Position numbers and translations under genes: made by a program
In this document: positions 27,081 to 45,698 of the stretch, one piece after another
How positions within the stretch are numbered: the stretch's first letter is position 1
Layout: the number at the start of each line of letters is the position of its first letter
IMG/VR virus record: IMGVR_UViG_3300020471_000004
Coordinates: 168,693 to 232,692 of that record
Length of the DNA: 64,000 nt
Strand: one strand, 5' to 3'
The notes under the pieces: model-generated
What the model was told of the DNA's origin: nothing
Databases searched by the model: none
The model's input: the letters and a program-made list of their open reading frames with translations, nothing else

Positions 27081-29684
27081 TTAACCGTCCGGGCAGTTTA
27101 GAACTGCTTGTGCTTTGGTACGTGCTTCGTCTTCATCCGCAGCCTGCACTTGTACCTTATCGTTAGGATCCTTTGCGCACCATGCGTCATAAGTGTTAAG
27201 GACTGCCTCTGCAATACGGTCATTAAGTACGCTGTCCTCACCTGTAGTGTAACTGCTAAAGGTTTCAAAACTAGCTTGTGTGACAGCAGAAGGTGCTGTG
27301 GTTAAGATACCATTAAATCCGTCTTCTGCAACTGCCGTGTTATTTGGGTTTCCGCTATTTCTAGAGTCTTCCGCAGCATCTATGCTAGACTGAGGTAACA
27401 GCCTCACTACTGTAATTTTTAGCTCTTCTATATGGGAAGGCAGTGTGCCTATTGTAGAAGACCAAGTACTTCCCTCTTGTGCTACTACAGCGGTAGCGGC
27501 AGGAGTAGCTGCATACTGAGTGCCTGTTACATTACCGTGCGATTCTATAAGCGGATGATTATCGCTGGCACTATTGTATCCAATCAAATTGGGAGCGCCT
27601 GTTCCGTAACCGTCTTCTGCATCTGTTACAAACAAGATACTCACTTTCTTTTGAGCAGTAGGTAAGTTGTCTAATACCCATCTAACATAAGAAGTAAAGA
27701 ACGTAACAGATGCACCTGCTGAACCTACAACGTTTGAACTAGGAATCAAAAAGTCATTAAGAATCTGTACAGCAATATTATCCCTAGTTGCTGATATGTC
27801 GCCATTCAGATTCATATTTTGTCCTAACATAGATCCGCTGATGTCCCGATAAATATACACCTGGAAACTTTCACCTTCAGACGCCAAAGATACTTGAGTA
27901 TCGTTAGGTGAATCGTCAACTATAGTACCGGTACCAGTACTTCTGGTGATGGTACCTATGCTCGGATTTGAAATGGTGACCGTAAACGTTTCGTTGTGTT
28001 CGGGAATATCATCGCACTTGATTGTTATATCAATATCTTTGGACGTGTCGCCTTCTTCAAAAGTTAACGTTCCCGAAGCATTGACATAATCTGATCCAGC
28101 GTCTGCGCTACCTGCATTTGCTGACCAGTCTACAGTGCGAGCGTCACCAACAACCGCTTCATTTGCAGATACGGTGAACCTAGCTGTGGTATCTTGCATA
28201 GATCCTGTACACTCTGGAACGCTAACATCGTTTATACGAAATTCTGTAGTGTTGTTTACCATCAAACAAGGCAGCTCGAAAGTTAATGTTGCGGTGTCGG
28301 TATCTTGAACGCCTGCTTCTTGGTAATCGTTGTCGCTGACTGTAACCGAAATGTCGTACTGTTTAACGGCACGATCATCGTCTTCACCCATAGTATGACG
28401 TAGTTGGAAAATCCCTATTCTTCCATCTGCTTCGGTACCTTTTAGTTTTAAACTACGGTCAGTAGACTTCCAAGCGTAGCTATATTTCCGAAGTTCCCAA
28501 TCAGGCGGGTCTATGAAGTTTACTTCTACTCTAGCTTCTGCGCTAAAAGTTTCTCCTAATGCTAAACACCTATCTTCGCAAGGCACAAGCGGGTCTGGCT
28601 CAGGTTCTGGCTCAGGTTCTGGTTCTGGTTCTGGTTCAGGATCAGGCTCAACATACTCGTACATCTTAGGGCGTTGGTATATCTGTATGCCGTCACCGTT
28701 TTTGAAATCTAGTGTCCAGAAACTTGAAGTAGGCAATCCGTATATGGCAAACCAGTGGTCTCTACCTCCTGTAACTGCAAATCCTCTATCCCTACCTTGG
28801 CTATCTGAGTATTGAAGTAAGTCTACGTCCAAGAAAGCTTGTCCTTGAATACACAGCTCATCGCTACCTTTGTGGTCAAGGGTCGCAAACATATATTCCT
28901 CTTCGGGAGGCATAATCGCCTTGGATATGTTCGTCTTGGCTTTAACCATTGACGAAAACTTACTTACAGTAGTAAAGGTATTATAGAACCCTTTATTAGG
29001 GTCTTCCTCTATCCTTCTACGATAGATTTTATGCATTTGATGGCTACGAGGCCCTTTGAATGTAGTAGAAGTATTTACACCTGTACCACTTAATCTGAAC
29101 CAGTTATCCCAACCAGGCATACCGCTGTAAAATACCATGCGGCTATGGATTTTACTTGAGAACCTGTATGGATCTGCATGGTTTAAGAAAGGCACAGCAC
29201 TGTACCATTTCTCAGAGCTGGAGTCATCATTCTGTACTACAAAAAGGTATTCATAGCCTGTTTCAAAGTTCAGCGTAAGGGATCTGCCTTTCGTAGTGTT
29301 CCATTCTTGAAACGCATAGGTGTCATCGTTAGGATCTAATGACCAATTGTTCGGATCAGGACTTAGCTCTCTTTCACGTATACTCAAGATATAACAAGCA
29401 CTAGAGCTAGACCTAACTATCTCTAGTTTCTTGTAACCGTATTGGGTAACAGTTGCTGCCATAACTTGGTCAAGCCCTGTCGCTCGCCACCCTATAGTAC
29501 CTGAAGTAGGCTGACCTATATCCATATCAGGAATCTTAATGACTCCGTGACCTACTTCATCGTCTTTTCGGGCTTCAACTACGTGAACCATATACTCTCT
29601 ATTTGGTTGCCAGTCATGCCCGAACCAAGTTCTTTTTGAACCGGAGTGCCGGTATATTTCATTCCATGGATTTATCTGTGCCAT
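27081..29684 (-). CDS. fibre/adhesin protein with PE linker, Calx-beta and vWA-like domains
   Basis: (PE)n linker; INDVSV.E...DY..ASGTLTF..G.TSK.I.I....D...E.NETF.V.ISNP; MIDAS-like RDISGSM and LFVTD. Confidence 0.75.
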   Translation of the reverse strand: MAQINPWNEIYRHSGSKRTWFGHDWQPNREYMVHVVEARKDDEVGHGVIKIPDMDIGQPTSGTIGWRATGLDQVMAATVTQYGYKKLEIVRSSSSACYILSIRERELSPDPNNWSLDPNDDTYAFQEWNTTKGRSLTLNFETGYEYLFVVQNDDSSSEKWYSAVPFLNHADPYRFSSKIHSRMVFYSGMPGWDNWFRLSGTGVNTSTTFKGPRSHQMHKIYRRRIEEDPNKGFYNTFTTVSKFSSMVKAKTNISKAIMPPEEEYMFATLDHKGSDELCIQGQAFLDVDLLQYSDSQGRDRGFAVTGGRDHWFAIYGLPTSSFWTLDFKNGDGIQIYQRPKMYEYVEPDPEPEPEPEPEPEPEPDPLVPCEDRCLALGETFSAEARVEVNFIDPPDWELRKYSYAWKSTDRSLKLKGTEADGRIGIFQLRHTMGEDDDRAVKQYDISVTVSDNDYQEAGVQDTDTATLTFELPCLMVNNTTEFRINDVSVPECTGSMQDTTARFTVSANEAVVGDARTVDWSANAGSADAGSDYVNASGTLTFEEGDTSKDIDITIKCDDIPEHNETFTVTISNPSIGTITRSTGTGTIVDDSPNDTQVSLASEGESFQVYIYRDISGSMLGQNMNLNGDISATRDNIAVQILNDFLIPSSNVVGSAGASVTFFTSYVRWVLDNLPTAQKKVSILFVTDAEDGYGTGAPNLIGYNSASDNHPLIESHGNVTGTQYAATPAATAVVAQEGSTWSSTIGTLPSHIEELKITVVRLLPQSSIDAAEDSRNSGNPNNTAVAEDGFNGILTTAPSAVTQASFETFSSYTTGEDSVLNDRIAEAVLNTYDAWCAKDPNDKVQVQAADEDEARTKAQAVLNCPDG
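28594..28648 (-). repeat. 6-bp-period repeat encoding a (Pro-Glu)n linker
   Basis: EPDPEPEPEPEPEPEPDP. Confidence 0.8.
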
Positions 29685-29687
29685 GTT

Positions 29688-32600
29688 TTAGTTTTTCCTA
29701 TAAAAGCTATCGGTGTTATGTATTAATATAGGATTCTTACCTACATAGTAGCTGTCGTTTTCTTCTATATCTATTATAACAACGTCAATAGGATCTTTAA
29801 CACGTTCAAGAGTTCCTACGTACACTTCACGACCTTGCATATTCCACAAGTAGTCACCGATTTGAATATCTCTTACATCCATCCAATGCCAAGTGTCTTT
29901 ACGCTTTACAAAGATCTCATGCTCTTGTGTTATCTCTACATCGCCGTTTATGACCCAGTACTCTCTGAACCAATCGTGTTTAATACTTGTAACAGTACTG
30001 ATTACCTGACGGTTGCCTTCGGTGCTGGTTGTAGTCCATTCTTGCCAACCAGGAGTATTTTCGTCTATCATACCTGGGAACCAAGTAGATACAACTCTAT
30101 CTCCTACGCGAAGACGCTCTGCGTTGATAGTAGAACCGTCTTCTAGATGGACTAGTGTGCCGAAAGATACGCAGCCTCCACCGCCACCTCCAGAGTATAC
30201 CTGTGCTTTCTGCTGGATAGATACGGGTATAGGGGCACTCTTTTGTACTCCGCCTAAATCGTCTTTGACAAATATCTCTACTTCAAGGCTTGCTGTACCT
30301 GCAAGAGACGAATTGGATACTTCACGCTCGAACTGAATACTTAGGTTCAAGTTGTCAGGACTATAGACGTTATAATTAGATGACCTAGGGTCAGGTTCGT
30401 TATTTACATCGAATGCACAAAAGTTTTTGGTGCTTATTCTAGAACCAGGTATTGTGTTGTTGACAACCGTAACGTTCCACTTGTAGGTATATGTACGATT
30501 AGGGTCAAACTCAAACTGAGCAAGTAAGTTAGTAGAGTGTGCTACACCTGCTGCTTTATCATCGACACCAACCGTAGCGCTATCGGCAGTTTTACGCATA
30601 GTGAATACACTAACGTCACCGGGGCTTTCGGTATACGCGGGAGTACCTTCTCCTAGATCACCGTCTGTGGGCCAAGTCATCTCTAACTTGCTTGCATTTA
30701 TTCTAAACGCCAATATAGTTTCAGGGTGCGCGTACTTTGTAGCAGTCACCTTAGCAGTACCAATACTGGTTATAGCAGAAGTATAAACTATATTCATGTC
30801 ACCGCTAGTAGGAGCGCTAGACTCTACTATTGTTGCGATACCTTCACTGTCTAAAATTTCTCCAGCACTAGGATTAGATATAATAACCTTGAACTGCTCG
30901 TTCGGATCCTTGATGCTGTCTGAATATGTGTTAACGCTTATTGTTCCACTACCTGCACCTGCTGGTATTATTAACGTACCTGATTTAGCTTGGTAGTCTG
31001 CTTCGGTAGTAGGTATGCCTACGTTACCATCGCTGACTGTTTTAACTACCAGATTTGTCATACGAGCCGCATTTGACTGAACAGGGAGTCTAGAGTTAGC
31101 AGTATTCATTCCTGCAAATAAATAACTATCTCCTGCTTTATCAATAATAGCCTGAACACTAATACTATCAATGTTGCTTATACCTGAAACATTTGAAGTT
31201 TCGTTTACTATATTAACAACTGCCTTTAAACCAAACGCATTGATTAGGTCTTTGGCGTTAGCATTCATGTATTTGTATGGACTGCTGTACGTTTTGGTAT
31301 CTAGTGCTGCGGTCTGTACCACAACTACAGGTTCGTTGGACTTTTGTGCTGCCCTAGAAACTGCAATTGCCCAAGCAGTCGCCTGCTCTTTACCAAATAC
31401 TTTGGTACTAAAATCAGTAGCACTTGAAATATCAGAGTTTTCAGCCGCGTGTTGTCTCCACTCTCCCCACTGGTCAATGATAACAATATCGTATCGGTCA
31501 ACAATATCTTTAGGCGTGCTATAAGTACTTGACCCTGTTGTAAAGCCGTTATCTCTAGTTTCACCGTGGTCGCCAAAGTTATTTACAAAGTGAACGTCTA
31601 CTTGAATACCAAATATCTTATTCATGCTAGATACTAAGTGATCCATTCCTTTAGTAGCATGGTAAGCGACTTCATACTCTCTTTCATCTACTCTCGGATC
31701 AGGGTCATAAGGTGTTGCGTATTCAAGTATTCTTTGGTGAGATACAATAAGCATCTTGGTAGAACTTGAAAGTGTGCCTAATCTATTTTCGAAAATATTA
31801 GCAAGCATTTGGAAGTAAGGAGGTAACTCAGAGCGGTTGCTAACACTGTGATCAGTATTGCCTGAGTTATAGTTAGAGGCGTTGTAGTACCCTTGCATGT
31901 AATCAAAGTCATCTAGATCGTATAAACGACTAGGATCTGCCTCAAGAACAAGAGTATAGTTTTGGTTCTCGTCATCGTACACTACCGAACTCACAATCCC
32001 GTCTTGTCTAAACAAAGGATAAGGATTAGTAGAACCTGCAACATCACCTGCGGTACTCAGCGCTGTAATATCTTGTGTGGTGTAGTCAACACTTATGTCC
32101 TGGTCAGTAGGGTAGTTTAAGGCAACTGTGAACTTTGCAGTACTACCTTCGTTAACTCGGATAGAGTTAATGGCGATTTGAACATCAGGACACAACGGTA
32201 CTAACTGGTCATCTATTTCTATATTAAGAATAGGTACGTAACAGCCTACCCAATAAGTCCAGCTAGAATCAAGAGGGCTATCGATTCGGACACTAACGTC
32301 CTCTAAGTCATCAAAGTTAGAGGATTCTTTTAGTCTAAACCACTGTAAGAATGATGTGCCTCTACTTTTCTTGGCTGTTACAAGTTCACCGTTTTTATCA
32401 AACACACTTGCGGTATAGGTAAAATCGCCATAACCTGTTATCTTAATAGACGCAACACCGTCACCGTCAAGGGTATTCATTCGGTAATGGTCTTCGGTAC
32501 TGTAGTGACCTGCACTAGATATGCCAGCTTCTGGCATTTCACAAGGGAATCTGTTCTCTTTGTAGCCTGCTGTGTTAGGGTCGTAAAGCATATACTCCTG

Positions 32601-33797
32601 GCTAGACATATCTGCAAGGTATTCACGCTCTTGTGCCATCACTTTAACAACAATATCAGGAACAGGTGTAGCAAATCTCCAAGGGTCAAACACTATTCGG
32701 AGCAGTCCGTCGGTATTTTTGTTGCCCATTGTAGATGCAATACGTTCACCGCCGTGGTATACTTCTACCCAATCAGCATTTTCCCACGTTTCATAGTTAA
32801 GGTGTAGCACATACGGTCCCGCAGCCGGATTAACTAGACCTACTGTGTGTACGTATTCTTGCCACCACTGACCTTCTTTGAATCGGTCACTCATATAAGC
32901 CACACGGCTATGTGCAGGTGCAGGGAAAATACTGGTACCTACGTATTCCATGTTTCTTATTTGTGCTAGGTGTCTGTTGTTGCCAGGTTCAAATACAGGT
33001 AATGCCAGAACAGCTTTGGGCCCTACAACACTGTATTGCCAACGAGTCTTGTCTTCGCCTCTAACCCTGATCATTACGCGAGATTCACCAGCACCTATGT
33101 TAGGGTTAGCACCGAACTCTAGTTTACCTCTACCGAATACTCTGCCACAAGTAGAAGCAATCAAAGCTCCTAGGTAGTACACGTCAATAGAAATTCCAGT
33201 TTCAGCATAACTTGCGTAAAGTATTTCGAACTGACCTGCGGTATCTCCAGTTTCGTATATGGTTTCCGTTACCGCGCTGCCTGTGCTAAAGGTATGGGTA
33301 GACACAAAGCTAGGGTTTTCGTAGGTTCCCCTTCCGTAAAAAGAGTTGATACCTGAATTATCGTAGGTATCTTTTAGATTGTCTATACCCGGTCTATTGA
33401 TAACTTTACCTTCGTATGTACCAAAAGACTTTTCTAAACCAAAGCCTACTTGTCCTGCATCTGGTAAGTCGTAACCTGCAGGATACCCTTCAAGTATATC
33501 AAATTCTGCACCGCCTGAACCTAGACCGTTACCTGAGCCTGCATCTGTTATACTTACTGTATCGGGACAAGCTATTGAATTAAGCTGGGCTAAGTTGGCA
33601 CAGGGATCGTCAAGTGCAGGATCAAACGTACAATCTACGTCTAACCACTTGCTATTGCCAGAGTCCCTTACTTTTGTTTGAGCTGGATAAAACCTTACCC
33701 AGCTGGCATTAAAAGCATCCCGAAAATAGAATTCACTATTACATTGGTCTAACCATTGGTTATTCAAGATGTTTCTTACTGTTACGCGAACACTCAT
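29688..33797 (-). CDS. large fibre protein with split Calx-beta and C-terminal Hint domain
   Basis: repeated beta-sandwich modules, two Calx-beta halves, GGGGGG-C...TQEH...IHNT. Confidence 0.75.
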   Translation of the reverse strand: MSVRVTVRNILNNQWLDQCNSEFYFRDAFNASWVRFYPAQTKVRDSGNSKWLDVDCTFDPALDDPCANLAQLNSIACPDTVSITDAGSGNGLGSGGAEFDILEGYPAGYDLPDAGQVGFGLEKSFGTYEGKVINRPGIDNLKDTYDNSGINSFYGRGTYENPSFVSTHTFSTGSAVTETIYETGDTAGQFEILYASYAETGISIDVYYLGALIASTCGRVFGRGKLEFGANPNIGAGESRVMIRVRGEDKTRWQYSVVGPKAVLALPVFEPGNNRHLAQIRNMEYVGTSIFPAPAHSRVAYMSDRFKEGQWWQEYVHTVGLVNPAAGPYVLHLNYETWENADWVEVYHGGERIASTMGNKNTDGLLRIVFDPWRFATPVPDIVVKVMAQEREYLADMSSQEYMLYDPNTAGYKENRFPCEMPEAGISSAGHYSTEDHYRMNTLDGDGVASIKITGYGDFTYTASVFDKNGELVTAKKSRGTSFLQWFRLKESSNFDDLEDVSVRIDSPLDSSWTYWVGCYVPILNIEIDDQLVPLCPDVQIAINSIRVNEGSTAKFTVALNYPTDQDISVDYTTQDITALSTAGDVAGSTNPYPLFRQDGIVSSVVYDDENQNYTLVLEADPSRLYDLDDFDYMQGYYNASNYNSGNTDHSVSNRSELPPYFQMLANIFENRLGTLSSSTKMLIVSHQRILEYATPYDPDPRVDEREYEVAYHATKGMDHLVSSMNKIFGIQVDVHFVNNFGDHGETRDNGFTTGSSTYSTPKDIVDRYDIVIIDQWGEWRQHAAENSDISSATDFSTKVFGKEQATAWAIAVSRAAQKSNEPVVVVQTAALDTKTYSSPYKYMNANAKDLINAFGLKAVVNIVNETSNVSGISNIDSISVQAIIDKAGDSYLFAGMNTANSRLPVQSNAARMTNLVVKTVSDGNVGIPTTEADYQAKSGTLIIPAGAGSGTISVNTYSDSIKDPNEQFKVIISNPSAGEILDSEGIATIVESSAPTSGDMNIVYTSAITSIGTAKVTATKYAHPETILAFRINASKLEMTWPTDGDLGEGTPAYTESPGDVSVFTMRKTADSATVGVDDKAAGVAHSTNLLAQFEFDPNRTYTYKWNVTVVNNTIPGSRISTKNFCAFDVNNEPDPRSSNYNVYSPDNLNLSIQFEREVSNSSLAGTASLEVEIFVKDDLGGVQKSAPIPVSIQQKAQVYSGGGGGGCVSFGTLVHLEDGSTINAERLRVGDRVVSTWFPGMIDENTPGWQEWTTTSTEGNRQVISTVTSIKHDWFREYWVINGDVEITQEHEIFVKRKDTWHWMDVRDIQIGDYLWNMQGREVYVGTLERVKDPIDVVIIDIEENDSYYVGKNPILIHNTDSFYRKN
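29715..30173 (-). other. Hint (intein-like) domain, 153 aa
   Basis: CVSFGTLVHLEDG, LRVGDRV, ITQEH (TxxH), IQIGDYL, LIHN. Confidence 0.85.
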
Positions 33798-33806
33798 TAG
33801 AATACC

Positions 33807-34301
33807 TTAACTAGGTTTAATCCATAGCGCACCTGAGCCTACAGGGCCTGGGTCTTCGTTATTTATATAGATAGCAACTTTGCCGTCTAGTCCAGATATA
33901 CCTTGAGGACCTGTAGGTCCCATAGGGCCTTGTTCTCCTTGCTTACCTTCAGGTCCTCTGACTCCTCGTTCACCTACTGGACCTCTCGGACCTCTACAGC
34001 CGCGTTCACCTTGTGTGCCGCTTTCACCTATGATACCGTCTGTACCTGACGTGCCTGATACACCCTGAGGTCCTTCTTTGCCTGTACCTACATCGCTTTG
34101 TGTCATAAAGTTAGATATAGTAAGTACAGGGTAACCAGGTATGCTAAGTGTTAAAGTACCACTTATGTTATCGAATGTTCCTGAAAGTTCGGTTGCTTGT
34201 GTTTCTTCGGTAGTTACCACAAGCCCTTTGCCTGTGTTAGACACGTTGCCTGAGCTACTTCCACCATCAATCATGTTTAAAAAAGGTTTAACGATACTCA
34301 T
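33807..34301 (-). CDS. collagen-like protein
   Basis: G-X-Y repeats; C-terminal DPG.VGSGALW. Confidence 0.8.
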   Translation of the reverse strand: MSIVKPFLNMIDGGSSSGNVSNTGKGLVVTTEETQATELSGTFDNISGTLTLSIPGYPVLTISNFMTQSDVGTGKEGPQGVSGTSGTDGIIGESGTQGERGCRGPRGPVGERGVRGPEGKQGEQGPMGPTGPQGISGLDGKVAIYINNEDPGPVGSGALWIKPS

Positions 34302-34309
34302 ACTCTACC

Positions 34310-34948
34310 TCATACGAATTGATCTGTGTCATCTTCATATTGACCTATTGCAGGGTTAACCCATATAGCACCTGGGCCTATTCCAGAACCAGGATCAGTT
34401 TCAGATATGACAATATTAATATTTCCAGCTGGGCCTTGAGGACCAATAGGGCCAGTAGGGCCTGTATCTCCAGTCGGGCCTGTAGGTCCTGTTTCACCTT
34501 TGGGACCTTGCTCTCCTTGAGGACCTCTTTCTCCCATAGGTCCTGCACATCCTGCAGGGCCCGGAGGGCCTACTTGTCCTGGTCTACCGTTTTGACCGTC
34601 TTCACCTTTAGGGCCTGTAGGTCCGATAGGGCCTGCGCACCCTTCGTCTCCTACTTCACCGTCACGACCGTCACGACCATCTTGTCCGTCTTCACCTGGG
34701 TCACCTTGTGGTCCTTGCTGCCCTTCTGGTATACTATCAAATGTAGGAAATCCTGAAATAACAACTTCTTGACCATTAGCGAAACTTAAGGTAAGTACTC
34801 CGCTACCTATGTCATACGAGCCGCCTTCGATTTCACTTACATTTGAGGACACTTCGCTAGAAGTAGCAAGCTTACCTGATTCTACTACTACGGTATTCCC
34901 GTTAGAACCGGCTGCTTTTACCATGTTTAGTGAGGGTTTAGTTAACAT
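34310..34948 (-). CDS. collagen-like protein
   Basis: about 30 G-X-Y triplets; C-terminal DPGSGIGPGAIW; GAGG SD. Confidence 0.8.
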   Translation of the reverse strand: MLTKPSLNMVKAAGSNGNTVVVESGKLATSSEVSSNVSEIEGGSYDIGSGVLTLSFANGQEVVISGFPTFDSIPEGQQGPQGDPGEDGQDGRDGRDGEVGDEGCAGPIGPTGPKGEDGQNGRPGQVGPPGPAGCAGPMGERGPQGEQGPKGETGPTGPTGDTGPTGPIGPQGPAGNINIVISETDPGSGIGPGAIWVNPAIGQYEDDTDQFV

Positions 34949-34955
34949 ATTTTCC

Positions 34956-35417
34956 TCAGCTTATCTTGTTATGTACAAGTACGTTGTTCAAAAAGAACGT
35001 GTCGTACAGGTCAACTGTTACTTCGTAAGTCTGACAATTAGCTTCTATAAAAAGGTTAGACTCGACTTGTATTACCGAGTCTTTGCCGAATAGTTTATCC
35101 CCAGTCACTATTTGATGCGGAAACTTCCACTGCCAGTACCCAGCTCTTTGAGTAAGGATAGGTTGGTCTTTTACAAAGTGCATAGTATTAATTTTGTAGT
35201 AGCCTGTTCTGATAAACGTTTCTTTTAAAACAACTTCAACGTCTACTACTTTACCAGCGATATTACGTGTTGCCCAATCTATCGCAAATTCTTCGTTTCC
35301 GAATCGAGAGCTTGGCATAGCACTGATACGCAAACCTGTTATTTTGTCACCCACAGATATGTCAATGGCATTTCGGGGATGAAAGTCGGAACCTATATAA
35401 GCTATTTGCTTTATCAT
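34956..35417 (-). CDS. stand-alone degenerate Hint-like protein
   Basis: AIDISVGDKI, WQW...IVTGDKL, TYEVTVD..DTFFLNNVLVHN; no Cys1 or TxxH. Confidence 0.7.
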   Translation of the reverse strand: MIKQIAYIGSDFHPRNAIDISVGDKITGLRISAMPSSRFGNEEFAIDWATRNIAGKVVDVEVVLKETFIRTGYYKINTMHFVKDQPILTQRAGYWQWKFPHQIVTGDKLFGKDSVIQVESNLFIEANCQTYEVTVDLYDTFFLNNVLVHNKIS

Positions 35418-36934
35418 TAGTATTTAACCGTTTGCGTTGTGTTATGAACAACTATAGGAGTCTGTCCTGCAAAATAGTTATCGTTAGGCTCTGCATCAAG
35501 AACAACTACGTTTACAGGACCTTCGTTGAATACAATGCTGCTGACTTCGACTTCTCTATCTACTCCCATAAGTAAATCACCTTCTTTCAATTCAGATGCA
35601 TCTAACCATTGCCACTGTGTGCCTTGTTTGGCAAAAACAGGGTGCTTGTCGGTAATTACTACATCGTTGTTGATAGTCCAAGATTTTGAATAAGATGCCT
35701 TAAATGCTACTTTAATTCGAGTAGCTGCGACCTTTCCGTTTTTAAGTTCAGTAGTTTTCCAATCTTGCCAACCTTGTTCTGATTCATCTAACAGACCGTC
35801 ACAAGTATAGCTTTGAACCGAATCTCCTACTCTAACGTATTTGGCTTTTTTGGTAGTACCGTCCCACATAAGAACAGGAGTGTCTTCGTGCAAGCAACCA
35901 CCTCCGCCTACTACAACACCTCCGCCGCCTCCGCCTACAGGGCCTGTATCGACTCTTCGGTTAAAGCCTGAAAACGAAAATATAATATTATCTATTACTT
36001 TACGTTCAGTACTGTTCTTATCAGTGATTGTTACTTTCATTTTGCCTTTGTATTCGTAAGTATCTTGAGGCGCAATGGTTCGCAACATACTCAAACGAAT
36101 AGAGTTTGCGGTTGTTTGGCTTTCTACTACCAGACCAGGTACATCCCAGCTTCCATCGATAGGTTCCCATTTGTATGTAAAGGGCCCGACACCGCCACTC
36201 AGGTTTCTAACAACCAGTGTAGCAATACCGCTAAAAGAATCGTTTACCATTTCGGCAAGTTCGATATGTTGATTGTTAACACTAGCTGTAAGTTCTTCGA
36301 TTTCTTGCTCTTCAGGAACGTCTACAGCGACACCTGCAGGAGCAGCCCACAAAAAGAAACTTGAGTCAGGAGTAGAAGTGCCGTAATACACAGACTCTTT
36401 AGGAGTTTCACCTGTAGGCCCTTGAGGTCCTACAATACAGCTAGGTCCTTGCGGGCCCATAGGCCCTTGGTCTCCGACTTGACCTCGTATGCCTGTATCA
36501 CCACGAGGTCCTACTCCTCCCGGGCATCCATACTTACCTATGACACCTATCTTTCCGTCTTCGCCTTCTAGTCCTGCTATACCTTGTTCACCTGTAGGCC
36601 CTATAGGTCCTTCACATCCAGTTTTACCTTTCTTACCGTCACGACCTACTCTTCCGTTCTTGCCGTTACGACCTCGAGGGCCTTTTATTCCCCGAGGTCC
36701 CTCACCAAAGAAAGTCTGAGTCATGAAGCCTGATATAGAAACTATTTCACCGTTAGCTCTAACAAGGTTAAGCGAGCCTAGCTTTTTATTAAAGCCTACT
36801 TGAACCACAAGCCTTTTGCTGATAGGTTCTTCTGCACTATACTCGATAGAGCGGTTTATTTCGTTTGCTTTTAAGCTTGTGCCTTCTTGATTTGCATTGG
36901 GTACAAAGCTTTTGATACTAGCTTCTTGTGCCAT
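35417..36934 (-). CDS. collagen-like fibre protein with Ig-like and C-terminal Hint domain
   Basis: G-X-Y region, GGVGPFTYKW module, GGGG-CLHEDT...TDKH...VVHNT. Confidence 0.8.
   Translation of the reverse strand: MAQEASIKSFVPNANQEGTSLKANEINRSIEYSAEEPISKRLVVQVGFNKKLGSLNLVRANGEIVSISGFMTQTFFGEGPRGIKGPRGRNGKNGRVGRDGKKGKTGCEGPIGPTGEQGIAGLEGEDGKIGVIGKYGCPGGVGPRGDTGIRGQVGDQGPMGPQGPSCIVGPQGPTGETPKESVYYGTSTPDSSFFLWAAPAGVAVDVPEEQEIEELTASVNNQHIELAEMVNDSFSGIATLVVRNLSGGVGPFTYKWEPIDGSWDVPGLVVESQTTANSIRLSMLRTIAPQDTYEYKGKMKVTITDKNSTERKVIDNIIFSFSGFNRRVDTGPVGGGGGGVVVGGGGCLHEDTPVLMWDGTTKKAKYVRVGDSVQSYTCDGLLDESEQGWQDWKTTELKNGKVAATRIKVAFKASYSKSWTINNDVVITDKHPVFAKQGTQWQWLDASELKEGDLLMGVDREVEVSSIVFNEGPVNVVVLDAEPNDNYFAGQTPIVVHNTTQTVKY
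35441..35896 (-). other. Hint (intein-like) domain, 152 aa
   Basis: CLHEDTPVLMWDG, VRVGDSV, ITDKH, LKEGDLL, VVHN. Confidence 0.85.
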
Positions 36935-42300: not shown

Positions 42301-44238
42301 GTAACGATAAACACTAATACGGGCATTGATGTTAACTTGTTCTGAATAAACTCCTAGGTCTTGTGCTACCAACAAACCGTTTTCTATGTTACCAGCCTTG
42401 GCTGTAGCTGTTTGACTACCAAACCAATCTGCTTCCACTACAGTCTGCATACCGTTAGACCAGGTTGCTAGCAGTTGGTAAACAGTTCGGGTATTTTCTA
42501 TTACGGTATCTGGCCCAATGATTTGAATGTCTTCTATCACAAGTCTAGGCTTTTTAAAGTGTACTGCAACAGAGCCTTTTATCATTCTTTCGGATTCAGG
42601 ATCCTGATACACTACCGTAAATTCTGCATCGAAGTCTCGGTATACAATAGGTATATCGAACTCACCTGTTTCTTTTATTGCAGAAGCACTGGTAGAACTT
42701 TCCCATAGGCCTAATTCAAGATCAGTGCTACCTGCTCTCATTTGTGCAGGTACGCTGTACAGTTCTTTGGTAGAACCATCGGTGTAGTCTACCTGTGCTG
42801 TCAAGTAAACTCCTGCCATGCCTTGTATAATATCTTTTTGAGGGTCTAACTCTATCCAGTTTCCGTCAATGTCTTGCTCGAGGATAATTCGTACACGTTT
42901 GGGAATATTGTTGGTTGCAGCAGGAACTAGAGTAACTGCCATAGACTGTGTGCTTTGAGTTCCGTCAACATTTCGGTGTACAACACTTACTGTGGCAGGT
43001 ACTGGTTCAAATATTTCAGTCACATGCAAAACATTTTGGTCAAAGCTGGCTACGTCACTGTCAATATGCCAAGTAATACGGTCAGGGTCACCGAACTCTC
43101 TTACGTTATCATGGCGAGTGATAAGTTTGTAAACGTTCTTTTGGTCCTGTTTAGGATCAACAGGACCTACTATCTGCAAACTATCAGGAATAAAAGGAGT
43201 TCCAATAGGATAAAGCTGTACCGATACTGTACTGGTTTTACCTCTTAGTGTATAGGTAAACTCTATATCTTCTACAAAGTCTATGTCTTTAAACTCTACG
43301 CTTTTGCCGTCAAAGCTTTTTATGTAAGAACCTTGAACGTCAGTAGGGTATTCTGATACTTGTGTCCCATCACTCAAGGTAACCAAAACATGCGCTGGGT
43401 ATTGCCTGAATCCTTGCACCATTGAAGGTATAACAAATCTTTCATCAATAACTACAGGTTCAGATGCATTGACATAGATTTTAGGTTTGATTATGCTAGA
43501 GCCAAACATTTCAATTGTCATCTGTGCAGGTAGCACCAGATAAACAGAACGCACTACTTTTTCAATAGGTGCAAACTGGTAGTATACTTCTATAACTCGC
43601 CATTCTATAAGCGCACGAACAATTCTAGGGTCATCCCTAGATGGATCGATTGTACGGTTTCGGTGACTGTCAATAAGGCTGTCTATTGCGGCTCTTCCTG
43701 CCTCGTTTTGGTCTGAGTACCCTAATGCTTGGCGCAAGTAACTGGTATCTTTGTTTGATATTACCAATTCAAGTGCCTGTTCTAAACCGCGACCGTCAAT
43801 TGATAGATCAACGTGACTAGAAGAGTACCAATCTCCTCCGTCAGGCAAAAGCGTACCATGCTGGTGGTACAAGTCAACATCATCATTGGTGTACAGAACT
43901 TGTTCATCAAAATCTCTGCCTAGCAAAAACTTAATGAATTTAGGATAGTCAGGGTTACCGTCTACTTCCCAGAACTTTATCAACTGGTAAAAAGAACGTG
44001 TAAGTTTTTCACGGTTCTGTTCAAAGAAGTCGTGTGTAAGGTTAAGACCTGCTTGGCGTATAGCTCTTTCGACAAACACGGAGTCAGTATCTTGGTCAAT
44101 GTTTCTTATATTTGCAAATTCTTTTAAAGGATTTCCAATATTTCTATCGAAGACACGCTGAGCAATATCAGCAAAGGTAGACCACAATTCATTTTCTTTT
44201 AATACGTCTACCAATAGGTCTGATCCAGTTTTAGACAT
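39391..44238 (-). CDS. large baseplate wedge protein with Ig-like repeats
   Basis: 1615 aa downstream of gp6-like gene; repeated I.GP..V....Y.L...W modules. Confidence 0.65.
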   Translation of the reverse strand: MSKTGSDLLVDVLKENELWSTFADIAQRVFDRNIGNPLKEFANIRNIDQDTDSVFVERAIRQAGLNLTHDFFEQNREKLTRSFYQLIKFWEVDGNPDYPKFIKFLLGRDFDEQVLYTNDDVDLYHQHGTLLPDGGDWYSSSHVDLSIDGRGLEQALELVISNKDTSYLRQALGYSDQNEAGRAAIDSLIDSHRNRTIDPSRDDPRIVRALIEWRVIEVYYQFAPIEKVVRSVYLVLPAQMTIEMFGSSIIKPKIYVNASEPVVIDERFVIPSMVQGFRQYPAHVLVTLSDGTQVSEYPTDVQGSYIKSFDGKSVEFKDIDFVEDIEFTYTLRGKTSTVSVQLYPIGTPFIPDSLQIVGPVDPKQDQKNVYKLITRHDNVREFGDPDRITWHIDSDVASFDQNVLHVTEIFEPVPATVSVVHRNVDGTQSTQSMAVTLVPAATNNIPKRVRIILEQDIDGNWIELDPQKDIIQGMAGVYLTAQVDYTDGSTKELYSVPAQMRAGSTDLELGLWESSTSASAIKETGEFDIPIVYRDFDAEFTVVYQDPESERMIKGSVAVHFKKPRLVIEDIQIIGPDTVIENTRTVYQLLATWSNGMQTVVEADWFGSQTATAKAGNIENGLLVAQDLGVYSEQVNINARISVYRYDTEDNESVITLSASKTVTVNTLRRELDRIEVVTPQNLNQGNTNRVRFYADWNDSSTTQLVPYRIELKQNQETLSVFVRDGNTGTFEHTEGVPVILSLAPDLFEAEDDGIEHQQFQIDYLPYDSESTLRNISGLVNIHVYYINPLDLPEEGIVLDSETLDTTDVPVTSYSMSISVAPKIYLSTELEIVYVPDMAESSRVMLAAMVTYENGEIEQARAVWTISPSFDGQEIEADLSQGMYTLDRIVEILIGVDREWLDSNTLTEQQVSKLIDGEIVFKSLAEETQADWTQSVRNVIDANWGKEYPRAVIQTRPLEDGVQQSFTVTARYFQQEETVTITNNADELKIINTINSSRIEGPGEIYADNTLDFSYGLVIDYEDGGESYMVSNNWRVEVANKREVLEALLLTNDSYQSLLPTKADLSIYTAAELTEEQLSEVFENIQVAEIDNEGYLYPRININAQLIVYADYDDFRTQFTEQLSVYMKSTNAVLVGMYLNNITNDGSFERNTNTLPNDTSGANKVIRLPDVPVLPGNPDSFAQIDPVSQRLYYQFRAKVERTDDQGTFYDPEVVEWSLETSSSKVSLAQPNRNVIGLLVSPLESDTLVTIKAVYTEEFPRSTDAVDSSNPAASQDRVETVASSVRVIIESSKAIDVISRTGQTYVYDDPDSVFVPTVSITRRDGTLVANPSDMVTWYTVSGPVGLVYDQERDGFIIPKLTQNTAMVLKAVAQEGTQTISREFEYSLIMQFVPQSIDLIISSPVQDAIIDAAEYELGATLIGTTQSGQDTQDASDSCFYYFDYNESDASLEENTLVVSPIAESKTIEITIRSKDYPSFEQTREVRVYSSYPIFGAYLEGITDSATFNSYLDNFSTLTSRTAGTFEVNPNSNQFGYFAHPKSLGRARFTYIPENNSAVSLYGNWDGAERDREGNGSTTGPIEVTRVYEDGLTETWYLYRTQLRGFSRGRFAVRYDQE

Positions 44239-45698
44239 TATCTGCCCTCACGCTCGGTATACTTTAGAACTATGTTAAGCGAATTGAGAGTAACATAGTC
44301 AAGTTTAGATTCAGGTTCAAGGTCGTTTTTAGGAGAAATAACTTCTACGTAGTCTACTCCCTCTCGGCGGCTATCTTGGTCTTGTATGAACTTGCATACG
44401 TCTACCACATCACTTTTACTAAAACGTTTTCCCAACATGCCTGGTTTGCGTTTAAATAAATCAATGATTGCCTGCCTTAGTGTAGCTTTCATTTCTTGTA
44501 GGTTAACCCAAGACTCTACGGATACTTCAACAACTAGGTCAATAAGAATCTTTCTAGGGTTGTAAGTCTGTATTGTGATATGGTTACCTATACGTTCTTG
44601 TGCGTAGGCTACAAAATCATTCCAGTTTGCACTTCTAGGATTAGGATTGTCTCCTCCCCAAGTAGCCGAGTTTGAAGGCAATACACAAACCCGAACAACA
44701 TTTCGCCAACTAGGGTCATTAGGTGCTACATCTCTCTGTGATTGTATCTCGCAATCAGCTACGCCAGGGTATGCCATTATGTTTGCTTTCCAGCTAGAGG
44801 GTCTTACCCAAGTATTCTTAGATTGGTAAATATGAGGTGCATACTTTTTGTAGTAAGAAGCGCTTTTGGGATAAGTACCGCCTGTTATAGATTCTATAGA
44901 AGTTCCTGTAACAAGAGGTTCTGATACAACTGTTGCGCGTGTACCTGTAGTTCCTGTATTGCCGTTCTCACCTTGGGTAACAACGTACTGAACAATCAAT
45001 CGCTCTCTGCTGGTTAGTTGTCTGCCGAAAGTTCCGTCACCAAACAGTAAGCTTGCACGACCGTCACCTGTTGTTGTTTCAAAATACTTGGCATCAGTAC
45101 TGGTTAAATCTGTTAGCGATTCGTCATGCTCCTGCCAAAGAGTATATTCGCCTGTATCTTTGTTCTGGGTATAAACCAACAGGTCGTGAGTTGCTACAAC
45201 AAAGCCTGGTTCATTGAGTTTGAATTCAGGCATAACAAGGTTATAAAGAGCCAAATCAAATTCTTGTCGGCGAACTGTTCCTTCATACAGAACAAATTGT
45301 TTGGTCTCTCTGACCTCTAGTATGATAGCTACAGGGCTATAGAAGCTGCGACCGCTTACATTTATCTGAGCATAAGGGGCAATACTTACTTTTTGTGCTG
45401 AGTTATTTGTAAGGTTAAAAGTAGCCTTTGCGCTTGTGCGGCGATTAAGCTTTACACCTAACATTCGAGTGCAGGCGAATATGCTTGTGTCTCTACGTGC
45501 AGTAGTAAGGAAAGCCTCTAACTGGGCAACGTCAATACCTGTTTGCGCATTAGAGTAAAGCCCTGCCATAACGTCTACCAGAAACGTATTTAGGCTAGAA
45601 GTCTGTTTGTCCTGCCAGGGGTATTCTGAAACAAATTCGTTTTGAATTTCAGTAACTAGATTGTTGAATCCAACAACTGTGTTTGCTAGTGTGGTCAT
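44238..45698 (-). CDS. baseplate wedge protein (T4 gp6 / baseplate J-like)
   Basis: EAFLTTARR, LLFGDGTFG, YVVTQGENGN, GG..P. Confidence 0.85.
   Translation of the reverse strand: MTTLANTVVGFNNLVTEIQNEFVSEYPWQDKQTSSLNTFLVDVMAGLYSNAQTGIDVAQLEAFLTTARRDTSIFACTRMLGVKLNRRTSAKATFNLTNNSAQKVSIAPYAQINVSGRSFYSPVAIILEVRETKQFVLYEGTVRRQEFDLALYNLVMPEFKLNEPGFVVATHDLLVYTQNKDTGEYTLWQEHDESLTDLTSTDAKYFETTTGDGRASLLFGDGTFGRQLTSRERLIVQYVVTQGENGNTGTTGTRATVVSEPLVTGTSIESITGGTYPKSASYYKKYAPHIYQSKNTWVRPSSWKANIMAYPGVADCEIQSQRDVAPNDPSWRNVVRVCVLPSNSATWGGDNPNPRSANWNDFVAYAQERIGNHITIQTYNPRKILIDLVVEVSVESWVNLQEMKATLRQAIIDLFKRKPGMLGKRFSKSDVVDVCKFIQDQDSRREGVDYVEVISPKNDLEPESKLDYVTLNSLNIVLKYTEREGR

Follow-up and report, generated by a model that had tools for sequence, protein, structure and literature searches.

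What does a Hint domain do at the very end of a phage fibre protein? The question is raised by a 64,000-nucleotide stretch of viral DNA (the window; positions 168,693 to 232,692 of the 232,692-bp IMG/VR contig IMGVR_UViG_3300020471_000004), in which two different virion proteins, of 1369 and 505 residues, each close with a Hint module that follows a glycine run and is itself followed by only 7–8 residues. An earlier reading made from the sequence alone had taken the modules to be domesticated, serving either as cleavable assembly chaperones or as a means of leaving an activated Gly thioester on the fibre. The observation is confirmed as real and not due to chance, since a family profile recovers 7137 proteins and the modelled fold is that of a Hint domain. 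As to function, we hold with moderate confidence that the two C-terminal domains are domesticated autoprocessing modules resembling type A bacterial intein-like (BIL) domains, in which a thioester would be resolved by a lysine of the tail or by water, and cyclisation of the terminal asparagine would discard the domain.

Both proteins are encoded on the minus strand, as are all the features within them. The larger (29688–33797) is a putative virion adhesin or fibre protein, judged from its open reading frame (ORF), Pfam and PHROG matches; it carries a Calx-beta domain and ends in Hint module 1, 153 aa from Cys1 to His-Asn (29715–30173). A Gly6 linker (30174–30191) directly precedes Cys1, the SGGGGGG-C motif being kept in four related phages, and the 8-aa tail TDSFYRKN (29691–29714) has a conserved penultimate lysine (codon 29694–29696). 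phrog_26008 spans the N-terminal 537 aa of this protein and phrog_38766 the Hint part. The 505-aa protein (35417–36934) is a collagen-like fibre protein by its Pfam collagen repeat and PHROG matches, with an immunoglobulin (Ig)-like middle and the 152-aa Hint module 2 (35441–35896), which is 36% identical to module 1. phrog_38766, a 'virion structural protein', spans its residues 12–500, and many tail-fibre PHROGs also match. Its C-terminal end reads GGGGGGVVVGGGG-Cys...His-Asn-TTQTVKY, comprising a G6-V3-G4 linker before Cys1 (35897–35935), the module, and a 7-aa tail (35420–35440) whose penultimate lysine codon (35423–35425) is again conserved; in orthologous 505-type proteins the linker is xVIVGGGG-C, or GGGGGFRDADFE-C in genome L008. 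Translation of the exact coordinates placed GGGGGGC at 30171–30191, HNTDSFYRKN at 29691–29720, GGGGGGVVVGGGGC at 35894–35935 and HNTTQTVKY at 35420–35446, and thus showed both ORFs and both Hint limits of the sequence-only reading to be right to the base. The sole DNA-level relative among deposited phage genomes is phage NCTB (LT598654), with 69.6% identity over 32% of the region; the 1369-aa protein is 55% identical to its 'large intein domain protein', and the 505-aa protein is the orthologue of gp110 in the cultured Erwinia phage Y3.

The fold was not settled by Pfam or NCBIfam, because the window proteins gave only sub-threshold PT-HINT/Vint matches in Pfam (E 0.006–0.02; 15.6–17.2 bits against a cut-off of 27.7) and nothing useful in NCBIfam. 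Three other results, from a single-sequence search and a profile search of PDB sequences and from an AlphaFold2 (AF2) model compared by Foldseek, agree on a Hint fold. A single-sequence search of PDB sequences found the Clostridium thermocellum BIL domain 2LWY (E 2.3e-4), and a 72-member family profile matched BIL2 of Tetrahymena (6TMM/6Y75; 2.6e-15) and 2LWY (1.4e-14) ahead of the best intein (1.2e-8). The AF2 model made from the 72-sequence alignment reached a predicted local distance difference test score (pLDDT) of 92.8 and a predicted TM-score (pTM) of 0.88, superseding a model from three sequences (pLDDT 59). In Foldseek its first PDB match was 2LWY (E 1.2e-9), with BIL2 (6Y75/6TMM) at ranks 2–5 (E 1.5e-9), followed by mini-inteins and Hedgehog; there were 56 matches at E<=1e-3, and among the 50 best listed all descriptions were BIL, intein or Hedgehog. 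By profile and by structure, then, the modules lie nearer to the characterised BIL domains than to inteins or Hedgehog. Type A BIL domains were reportedly the subject of work by Amitai in 2003 and Dassa in 2004.

The residues of Hint chemistry are retained together with the fold. Block B TxxH is present in both modules (TQEH in module 1, TDKH in module 2), as is a common G(M/L)xDE..GWQxW.TT segment, and at 152–153 aa the domains leave no room for a homing endonuclease, all as first described. The proposed replacement of the block F histidine by aspartate agrees with the HMMER alignment to 2LWY (NDSYY / NDNYF), and this aspartate is conserved in at least 90% of the 72 aligned family sequences. 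In the same alignment Cys1 and the terminal His and Asn are invariant, and the block B threonine and histidine are conserved in at least 90%. That Cys1, T..H and His-Asn stay invariant or nearly so while mean identity is about 35% is an argument that this chemistry is in use. The terminal His-Asn, as in intein block G, and the lack of a conserved Cys/Ser/Thr at +1 are features of type A BIL domains, and we accordingly describe the modules as type-A-BIL-like, with autoprocessing predicted from the conserved catalytic residues.

A third Hint domain, overlooked in the earlier reading, bears on whether the fold alone might be what is kept. Between the two Hint-bearing genes lies a free-standing 153-aa ORF (34956–35417, minus strand), a degenerate paralogue (profile E 2e-54) without Cys1, with block B lost and ending VHN-KIS; its ATG overlaps the stop of the 505-aa gene (TAATG). 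NCTB and two additional, uncultured relatives (L003, L008) keep it as a separate gene of 152–153 aa, the BFVD model of the NCTB orthologue matches the AF2 Hint model at a TM-score of 0.90, and the type forms its own clade in a maximum-likelihood tree (support 100/99). Since Cys1 is absent, the paralogue should be unable to form a thioester and is presumably non-catalytic. It might therefore be argued that the fibre-borne copies, too, are non-catalytic structural or receptor-binding tips that keep only the Hint fold, the paralogue being proof that the fold can persist without Cys1 and TxxH. We consider this very unlikely: the fibre-borne copies retain the catalytic residues despite their divergence, and the sole paralogue that lost catalysis, no longer needing the N-terminal chemistry, lost exactly Cys1 and TxxH.

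Two other observations concern the paralogue. An invariant N-terminal M-x-K-Q and a terminal HN-K are found in it and its orthologues (L001, L003, L008), HN-K being relaxed to HN-R in L003 and in P0034, a protein of the same type; these are the only sampled tails in which arginine replaces lysine. A fusion of the 505-aa and 153-aa products by read-through or frameshifting was considered and set aside: more stops (TGA, TAA) lie in frame, and in each of the three other NCTB-like phages the 153-type gene likewise begins at an ATG of its own that overlaps the stop.

The two modules belong to a large family. A profile search of 1.84 billion cluster representatives returned the 7137 proteins at E<=1e-3, of which 1045 reached E<=1e-10 and 53 E<=1e-30. 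Over the family, hundreds of fibre or adhesin proteins that are otherwise unrelated carry the module at their extreme C-terminus. In the best 150 representatives the Hint domain nearly always closes the protein, and 112/112 complete modules retain Cys1; the N-terminal partners in the family are adhesin or fibre modules (collagen repeats, Listeria-Bacteroides repeats, PKD, fn3, Ig, Big_2 and Calx-beta). The poly-Gly run before Cys1 proved to be a family tendency and not a rule, with Gly at −1 in 71 of the 112 complete modules and at least GG in 52. PT-HINT (PF07591) was the best Pfam model, matching 63/83 family members at E<=1e-3. Apart from a few bacterial clusters, almost every neighbour in ESM-Atlas belongs to Uroviricota, the distribution in cellular genomes resting on ESM-Atlas taxa; BFVD neighbours include 'uncultured Caudovirales' fn3, PASTA and Hint proteins, and a word-indexed protein search found two close relatives only. 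The genomic contexts looked up were phage structural regions, with a portal gene upstream of P0013 and a syntenic NCTB-like block around P0025. Some phage-context proteins (P0036, P0123, P0040, P0053, P0133) carry tandem head-to-tail Hint arrays joined by HN-K-(G)n-C linkers, about eight units in the case of P0036 (L009 5335–9192).

In both window copies His-Asn is followed by threonine, which had been put forward as a possible splice nucleophile. This idea did not survive comparison with relatives. Among four related phages the large-protein tails are TDSFYRKN, APVDQKH, VDTVNRKV and LDSSNMNKF, with lysine kept and T, A, V or L at +1, and the 505-type tails are TTQTVKY, AVMVAKK, TTQTVKH and K, with T, A, T or K at +1; Y3 gp110 ends TDIVAKAEKL. 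Cys, Ser or Thr occupies +1 in 12.5% of 128 family tails and in 3/42 of an independent IMG/VR sample, the commonest residues in the family being A (28), K (26), V (11) and S (10). By these comparisons the Thr+1 of the window copies is best regarded as incidental, present by chance, and because it is not conserved, a GGG-TDSFYRKN splice through threonine is unlikely as a conserved reaction.

Lysine, by comparison, is almost universal in tails that range from 1 to 20 aa across the family. His-Asn with a tail of <=20 residues was found in 126 of the 150 representatives, and 123 of these 126 tails contain lysine; an alternative parse gave 124/128, against 35% of C-termini of matched length taken from ordinary ORFs in those phage loci. 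Tail lysine is enriched 4.2-fold and arginine is at 0.64-fold, with any arginine in only 8.6% of tails, so that the amine, and not charge, seems to matter. The last lysine is final or penultimate in 76/123 tails, and in the independent IMG/VR set all 42 tails of unique Cys1-bearing terminal modules contain lysine. Tandem Hint arrays have lysine in 26/37 inter-domain linkers and in 18/37 place it at +1, where canonical inteins carry their nucleophile. A residue that is lysine-specific, almost universal, flexible in spacing, near the free end and at +1 in arrays is what would be expected of a resolving nucleophile, and we infer a lysine step on these grounds.

The following sequence of events would account for these features. 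After translation, and probably after the fibre has folded, Cys1 would attack the carbonyl of Gly(−1) in an N-S acyl shift, the flexible Gly run keeping the Gly|Cys junction unhindered. The resulting fibre-Gly thioester would be resolved by an amine, for which the epsilon-amine of the tail lysine is the most likely acceptor, or otherwise by water. The lysine would thus be a built-in substitute for the absent +1 nucleophile, as with the C-flank lysine of Tetrahymena BIL2. Succinimide formation at His-Asn would then release the Hint domain, leaving a mature fibre whose ...GGG end is either free or carries a short tail peptide through an isopeptide bond. The domain itself would be needed only for a time, to cap the fibre during folding or assembly or to make processing irreversible.

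Several points weigh against autoprocessing through the tail lysine. P0062 and P0135 look catalytic and have no tail lysine. Lysine position varies from +1 to about +15, which fits a flexible nucleophile but also a non-chemical role, be it in solubility, in being recognised by some other factor, or as codon bias at the C-terminus; the family members are also related, so that the tail counts are not independent events. The benefit of a fibre capped with a tiny branched peptide is not evident, and with Asp in place of the block F His, cyclisation of Asn could be slower and the Hint domain could stay on the fibre. No biochemical or proteomic report of cleavage of any family member was found in the literature searched.

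Hydrolysis, with lysine in a non-chemical role, is a serious rival. The Hint domain would then be an intramolecular chaperone comparable to Peptidase S74, aiding folding or trimerisation and then lost when the Cys1 thioester is hydrolysed, Asn cyclises, or both. Self-cleaving C-terminal chaperones are common in phage fibres, S74 has been discussed for jumbo phages (PMC7824862), and type A BIL domains, which have His-Asn and no +1 nucleophile, undergo mainly cleavage rather than splicing (PMC4031507); the conserved catalytic residues and the frequent Gly at −1 suit hydrolysis as well. We nevertheless find an exclusively hydrolytic chaperone rather doubtful, because it leaves unexplained both the retention of the tail and the presence in ~97–100% of members of lysine and not arginine, Hint domains are not known as trimerisation modules, and Pfam finds no collagen or obvious trimeric fibre part in the 1369-aa protein. 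In addition, one family member also matches Pfam Peptidase_S74 (endosialidase chaperone), so that both self-cleaving modules can co-occur in one protein, which speaks against simple redundancy. The window proteins themselves have no PF13884 match, and their fold is that of Hint domains.

The sequence-only reading supposed that an activated Gly thioester might be passed to a nucleophile. The Thr-based form of this proposal is unsupported, as described above; the general idea has an experimental precedent in Tetrahymena BIL2, for which an isopeptide between a lysine epsilon-amine and a C-terminus has been shown and whose N-flank is conjugated to lysines (PMC8616854, section 2.4). A specific form of the autoprocessing model, which we put forward only tentatively, is that the module works as a lysine-splicing cassette, moving the C-terminal Gly of the fibre onto its own tail lysine or, acting in trans, to a lysine belonging to another virion protein such as the 153-aa paralogue, and then excising itself by Asn cyclisation.

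Improbable, in our estimation, is a purely intermolecular ligase, in which the fibre-Gly thioester would be passed to a lysine or other nucleophile on another virion protein (the 153-aa paralogue, a neighbouring fibre or the tail surface, for instance) or on a host ligand, giving covalent attachment. In its favour, BIL2 acts in trans, joining its N-flank to further proteins (PMC8616854); 'hairy Myoviridae' is the morphology described for the relatives Lu11, Y3 and the Dickeya JA/AD1 phages (PMC6143709); and the conserved non-catalytic paralogue, with its invariant Lys3 and HN-K/R, adjoins the Hint-bearing genes. The conserved acceptor lysine, however, is in cis, in the tail; Y3 lacks the 153-aa paralogue although it has a 505-type orthologue; a released virion would lose any exposed thioester to hydrolysis; and no acceptor was identified.

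Whether the modules are domesticated at all can be judged from their inheritance. In four related phages they are inherited vertically with their host genes, as expected of fixed, domesticated modules and not of mobile inteins. Between the window and NCTB the N-terminal part of the 505-type protein is 49% identical and its Hint domain 51%, with 52% and 59% for the large protein, so that the Hint domain diverges at the rate of the rest of its host protein. In the maximum-likelihood tree each Hint domain falls with its counterparts at the same gene position rather than with the others of its genome (505-type 85/99, large type 73/85). No homologue lacking the domain at the exact site was found, the sole Hint-less one, gp107 of Y3, lacking the entire C-terminal half.

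These results bear directly on the possibility that the modules are selfish mini-inteins lying near the C-terminus and splicing the 7–8-aa tail back via Thr+1. The window copies, with Cys1, TxxH, HN and Thr+1, have the residues that this would need. The idea is largely refuted all the same, and we give it almost no credence: +1 varies in the orthologues and is rarely C/S/T family-wide, the two copies cluster with their positional orthologues and are only 36% identical, which speaks against homing between sites, the extein context is unconserved and differs over hundreds of architectures, and the best matches are BIL domains, not inteins. A mobile intein was likewise ruled out by the vertical inheritance, the low identity between copies, and the lack of an endonuclease and of a conserved extein motif.

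Compared with known systems, the fibre-end modules belong with the BIL domains, while having a signature of their own: a Gly-rich −1 linker, GMxDE..W..W.T, block F Asp and a lysine tail. With the type A BIL of C. thermocellum (2LWY) they share the Hint fold, N-terminal Cys, TxxH, His-Asn, the lack of an endonuclease and of a conserved +1 nucleophile, and a site in variable surface or secreted proteins. Unlike it, they stand at the very end of virion proteins with only a 1–20-aa lysine-bearing tail to follow, have Asp for the block F His, the extra tryptophan-containing segment and the Gly-rich linker, and form a phage-fibre family mainly in Uroviricota whose autoprocessing is predicted from sequence. 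BIL2 of the T. thermophila BUBL protein (6Y75/6TMM), the best profile match, moves the C-terminus of its ubiquitin-like N-flank onto a lysine epsilon-amine, which parallels ...GGG|Cys plus lysine; it is, however, eukaryotic, Zn-regulated and set between two ubiquitin-like domains, with its lysine inside a folded C-flank, whereas the phage N-flank is a fibre and the candidate lysine lies in a short unstructured tail.

The C-terminal Hog/Hint domain of Hedgehog also cleaves Gly|Cys via a thioester resolved by a dedicated nucleophile, and the phage fold matches 1AT0 and 6TYY; Hedgehog, however, uses cholesterol through a sterol-recognition region, has no His-Asn step and is a weaker match than the BIL domains, whereas the phage modules have HN and only 7–8 residues after the domain. 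The likeness to Peptidase S74 of tailspikes and fibres is functional only, a C-terminal fibre module that removes itself after assembly (PMC7824862), the fold and the Ser-Lys dyad chemistry being unrelated. Pretoxin-HINT (PF07591) and class 1 mini-inteins belong to the same superfamily. PT-HINT, however, precedes a toxin domain, and the window modules fall below the PF07591 gathering threshold with no domain downstream; mini-inteins lie inside conserved enzymes, carry +1 Cys/Ser/Thr and often an endonuclease, whereas the phage modules have no conserved C/S/T at +1, no conserved host site and no endonuclease.

By ORF, Pfam and PHROG evidence, the Hint-bearing genes sit in a minus-strand tail and baseplate block that includes a baseplate wedge protein (44238–45698), a 1615-aa tail protein, an 805-aa protein, the 505-aa collagen-like protein, the 153-aa ORF, two collagen-like fibre paralogues, the 1369-aa protein and an 867-aa Calx-beta protein. 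The jumbo-phage group of PaBG, Lu11, Y3 and Dickeya JA includes NCTB (PMC7412058), and the best explanation is that the modules, borne here by an uncultured marine jumbo phage, are hosted by an NCTB-like lineage of 'hairy' jumbo myoviruses, on virion fibre or adhesin proteins.

The two collagen-like paralogues without Hint (212 aa and 164 aa; together 33807–34948, minus strand) lie between the Hint-bearing genes, have collagen Pfam matches and tail-fibre PHROGs, and are 62–76% identical among four related phages. With the 505-aa protein (35417–36934) they make up three adjacent minus-strand paralogues (164 aa, 33807–34301; 212 aa, 34310–34948) that share an N-terminal region of ~70 aa and a G-X-Y stretch, the Ig-like part and the Hint module being confined to the longest; they might form a heterotrimeric collagen fibre with one Hint domain per trimer. 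The 867-aa protein (27081–29684, minus strand) combines a (Pro-Glu)n spacer with a Calx-beta domain and matches no PHROG; in NCTB the corresponding protein bears the annotation 'aggregation factor core protein MAFp3', and the window protein is probably a further virion surface adhesin. Jumbo phages of Erwinia, Dickeya and Pseudomonas have the N-terminal ~540 aa of the 1369-aa protein (phrog_26008) as a shorter protein from which the half with Calx-beta and Hint is missing, one example being Y3 gp107 (L011 8599–10617; 672 aa); this shows that the distal part is exchanged as a module.

Two further observations concern the wider family. The Pfam AXH model (Ataxin-1/HBP1 module, PF08517) matches 14/83 Hint-family proteins, with E down to 5.6e-40, which suggests that the Pfam model is mis-seeded or else that AXH and Hint are related in a way not recognised so far. 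P0004 (L007 1010–3408) is a Hint-terminated 551-aa protein whose gene directly follows that of a T4 gp13-like neck protein, where T4-like phages have their fibritin/whisker genes.

GenBank annotation of the NCTB and Y3 genes already reads 'intein domain'. The literature searched held nothing relevant on BIL or Hint domains on phage fibres, its matches being inteins of terminase or ribonucleotide reductase, and the PaBG supplements mention inteins only in terminase; within that literature, the phage-fibre-terminal Hint family appears to be undescribed. If the modules are active, many proteins whose present label is 'intein domain protein', 'Hint domain containing protein' or hypothetical could be named, which would make mature fibre ends easier to predict. 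At about 152 aa the modules would be compact candidates for traceless C-terminal cleavage or isopeptide ligation in protein engineering, and the orthologue in the culturable phage Y3 offers a direct experimental route. If active, they would give the intein field a natural case of lysine replacing +1 Cys/Ser/Thr, and a poly-Gly thioester with a dedicated lysine would resemble ubiquitin-like conjugation without E1, E2 or E3. Lysine splicing, if true, would be a new mechanistic class beside class 1–3 inteins and an ATP-independent isopeptide ligation by which thousands of phages finish or cross-link their fibres. Active modules would be a third and widespread type of fibre terminus that removes itself, in addition to S74 chaperones and separate fibre chaperones.

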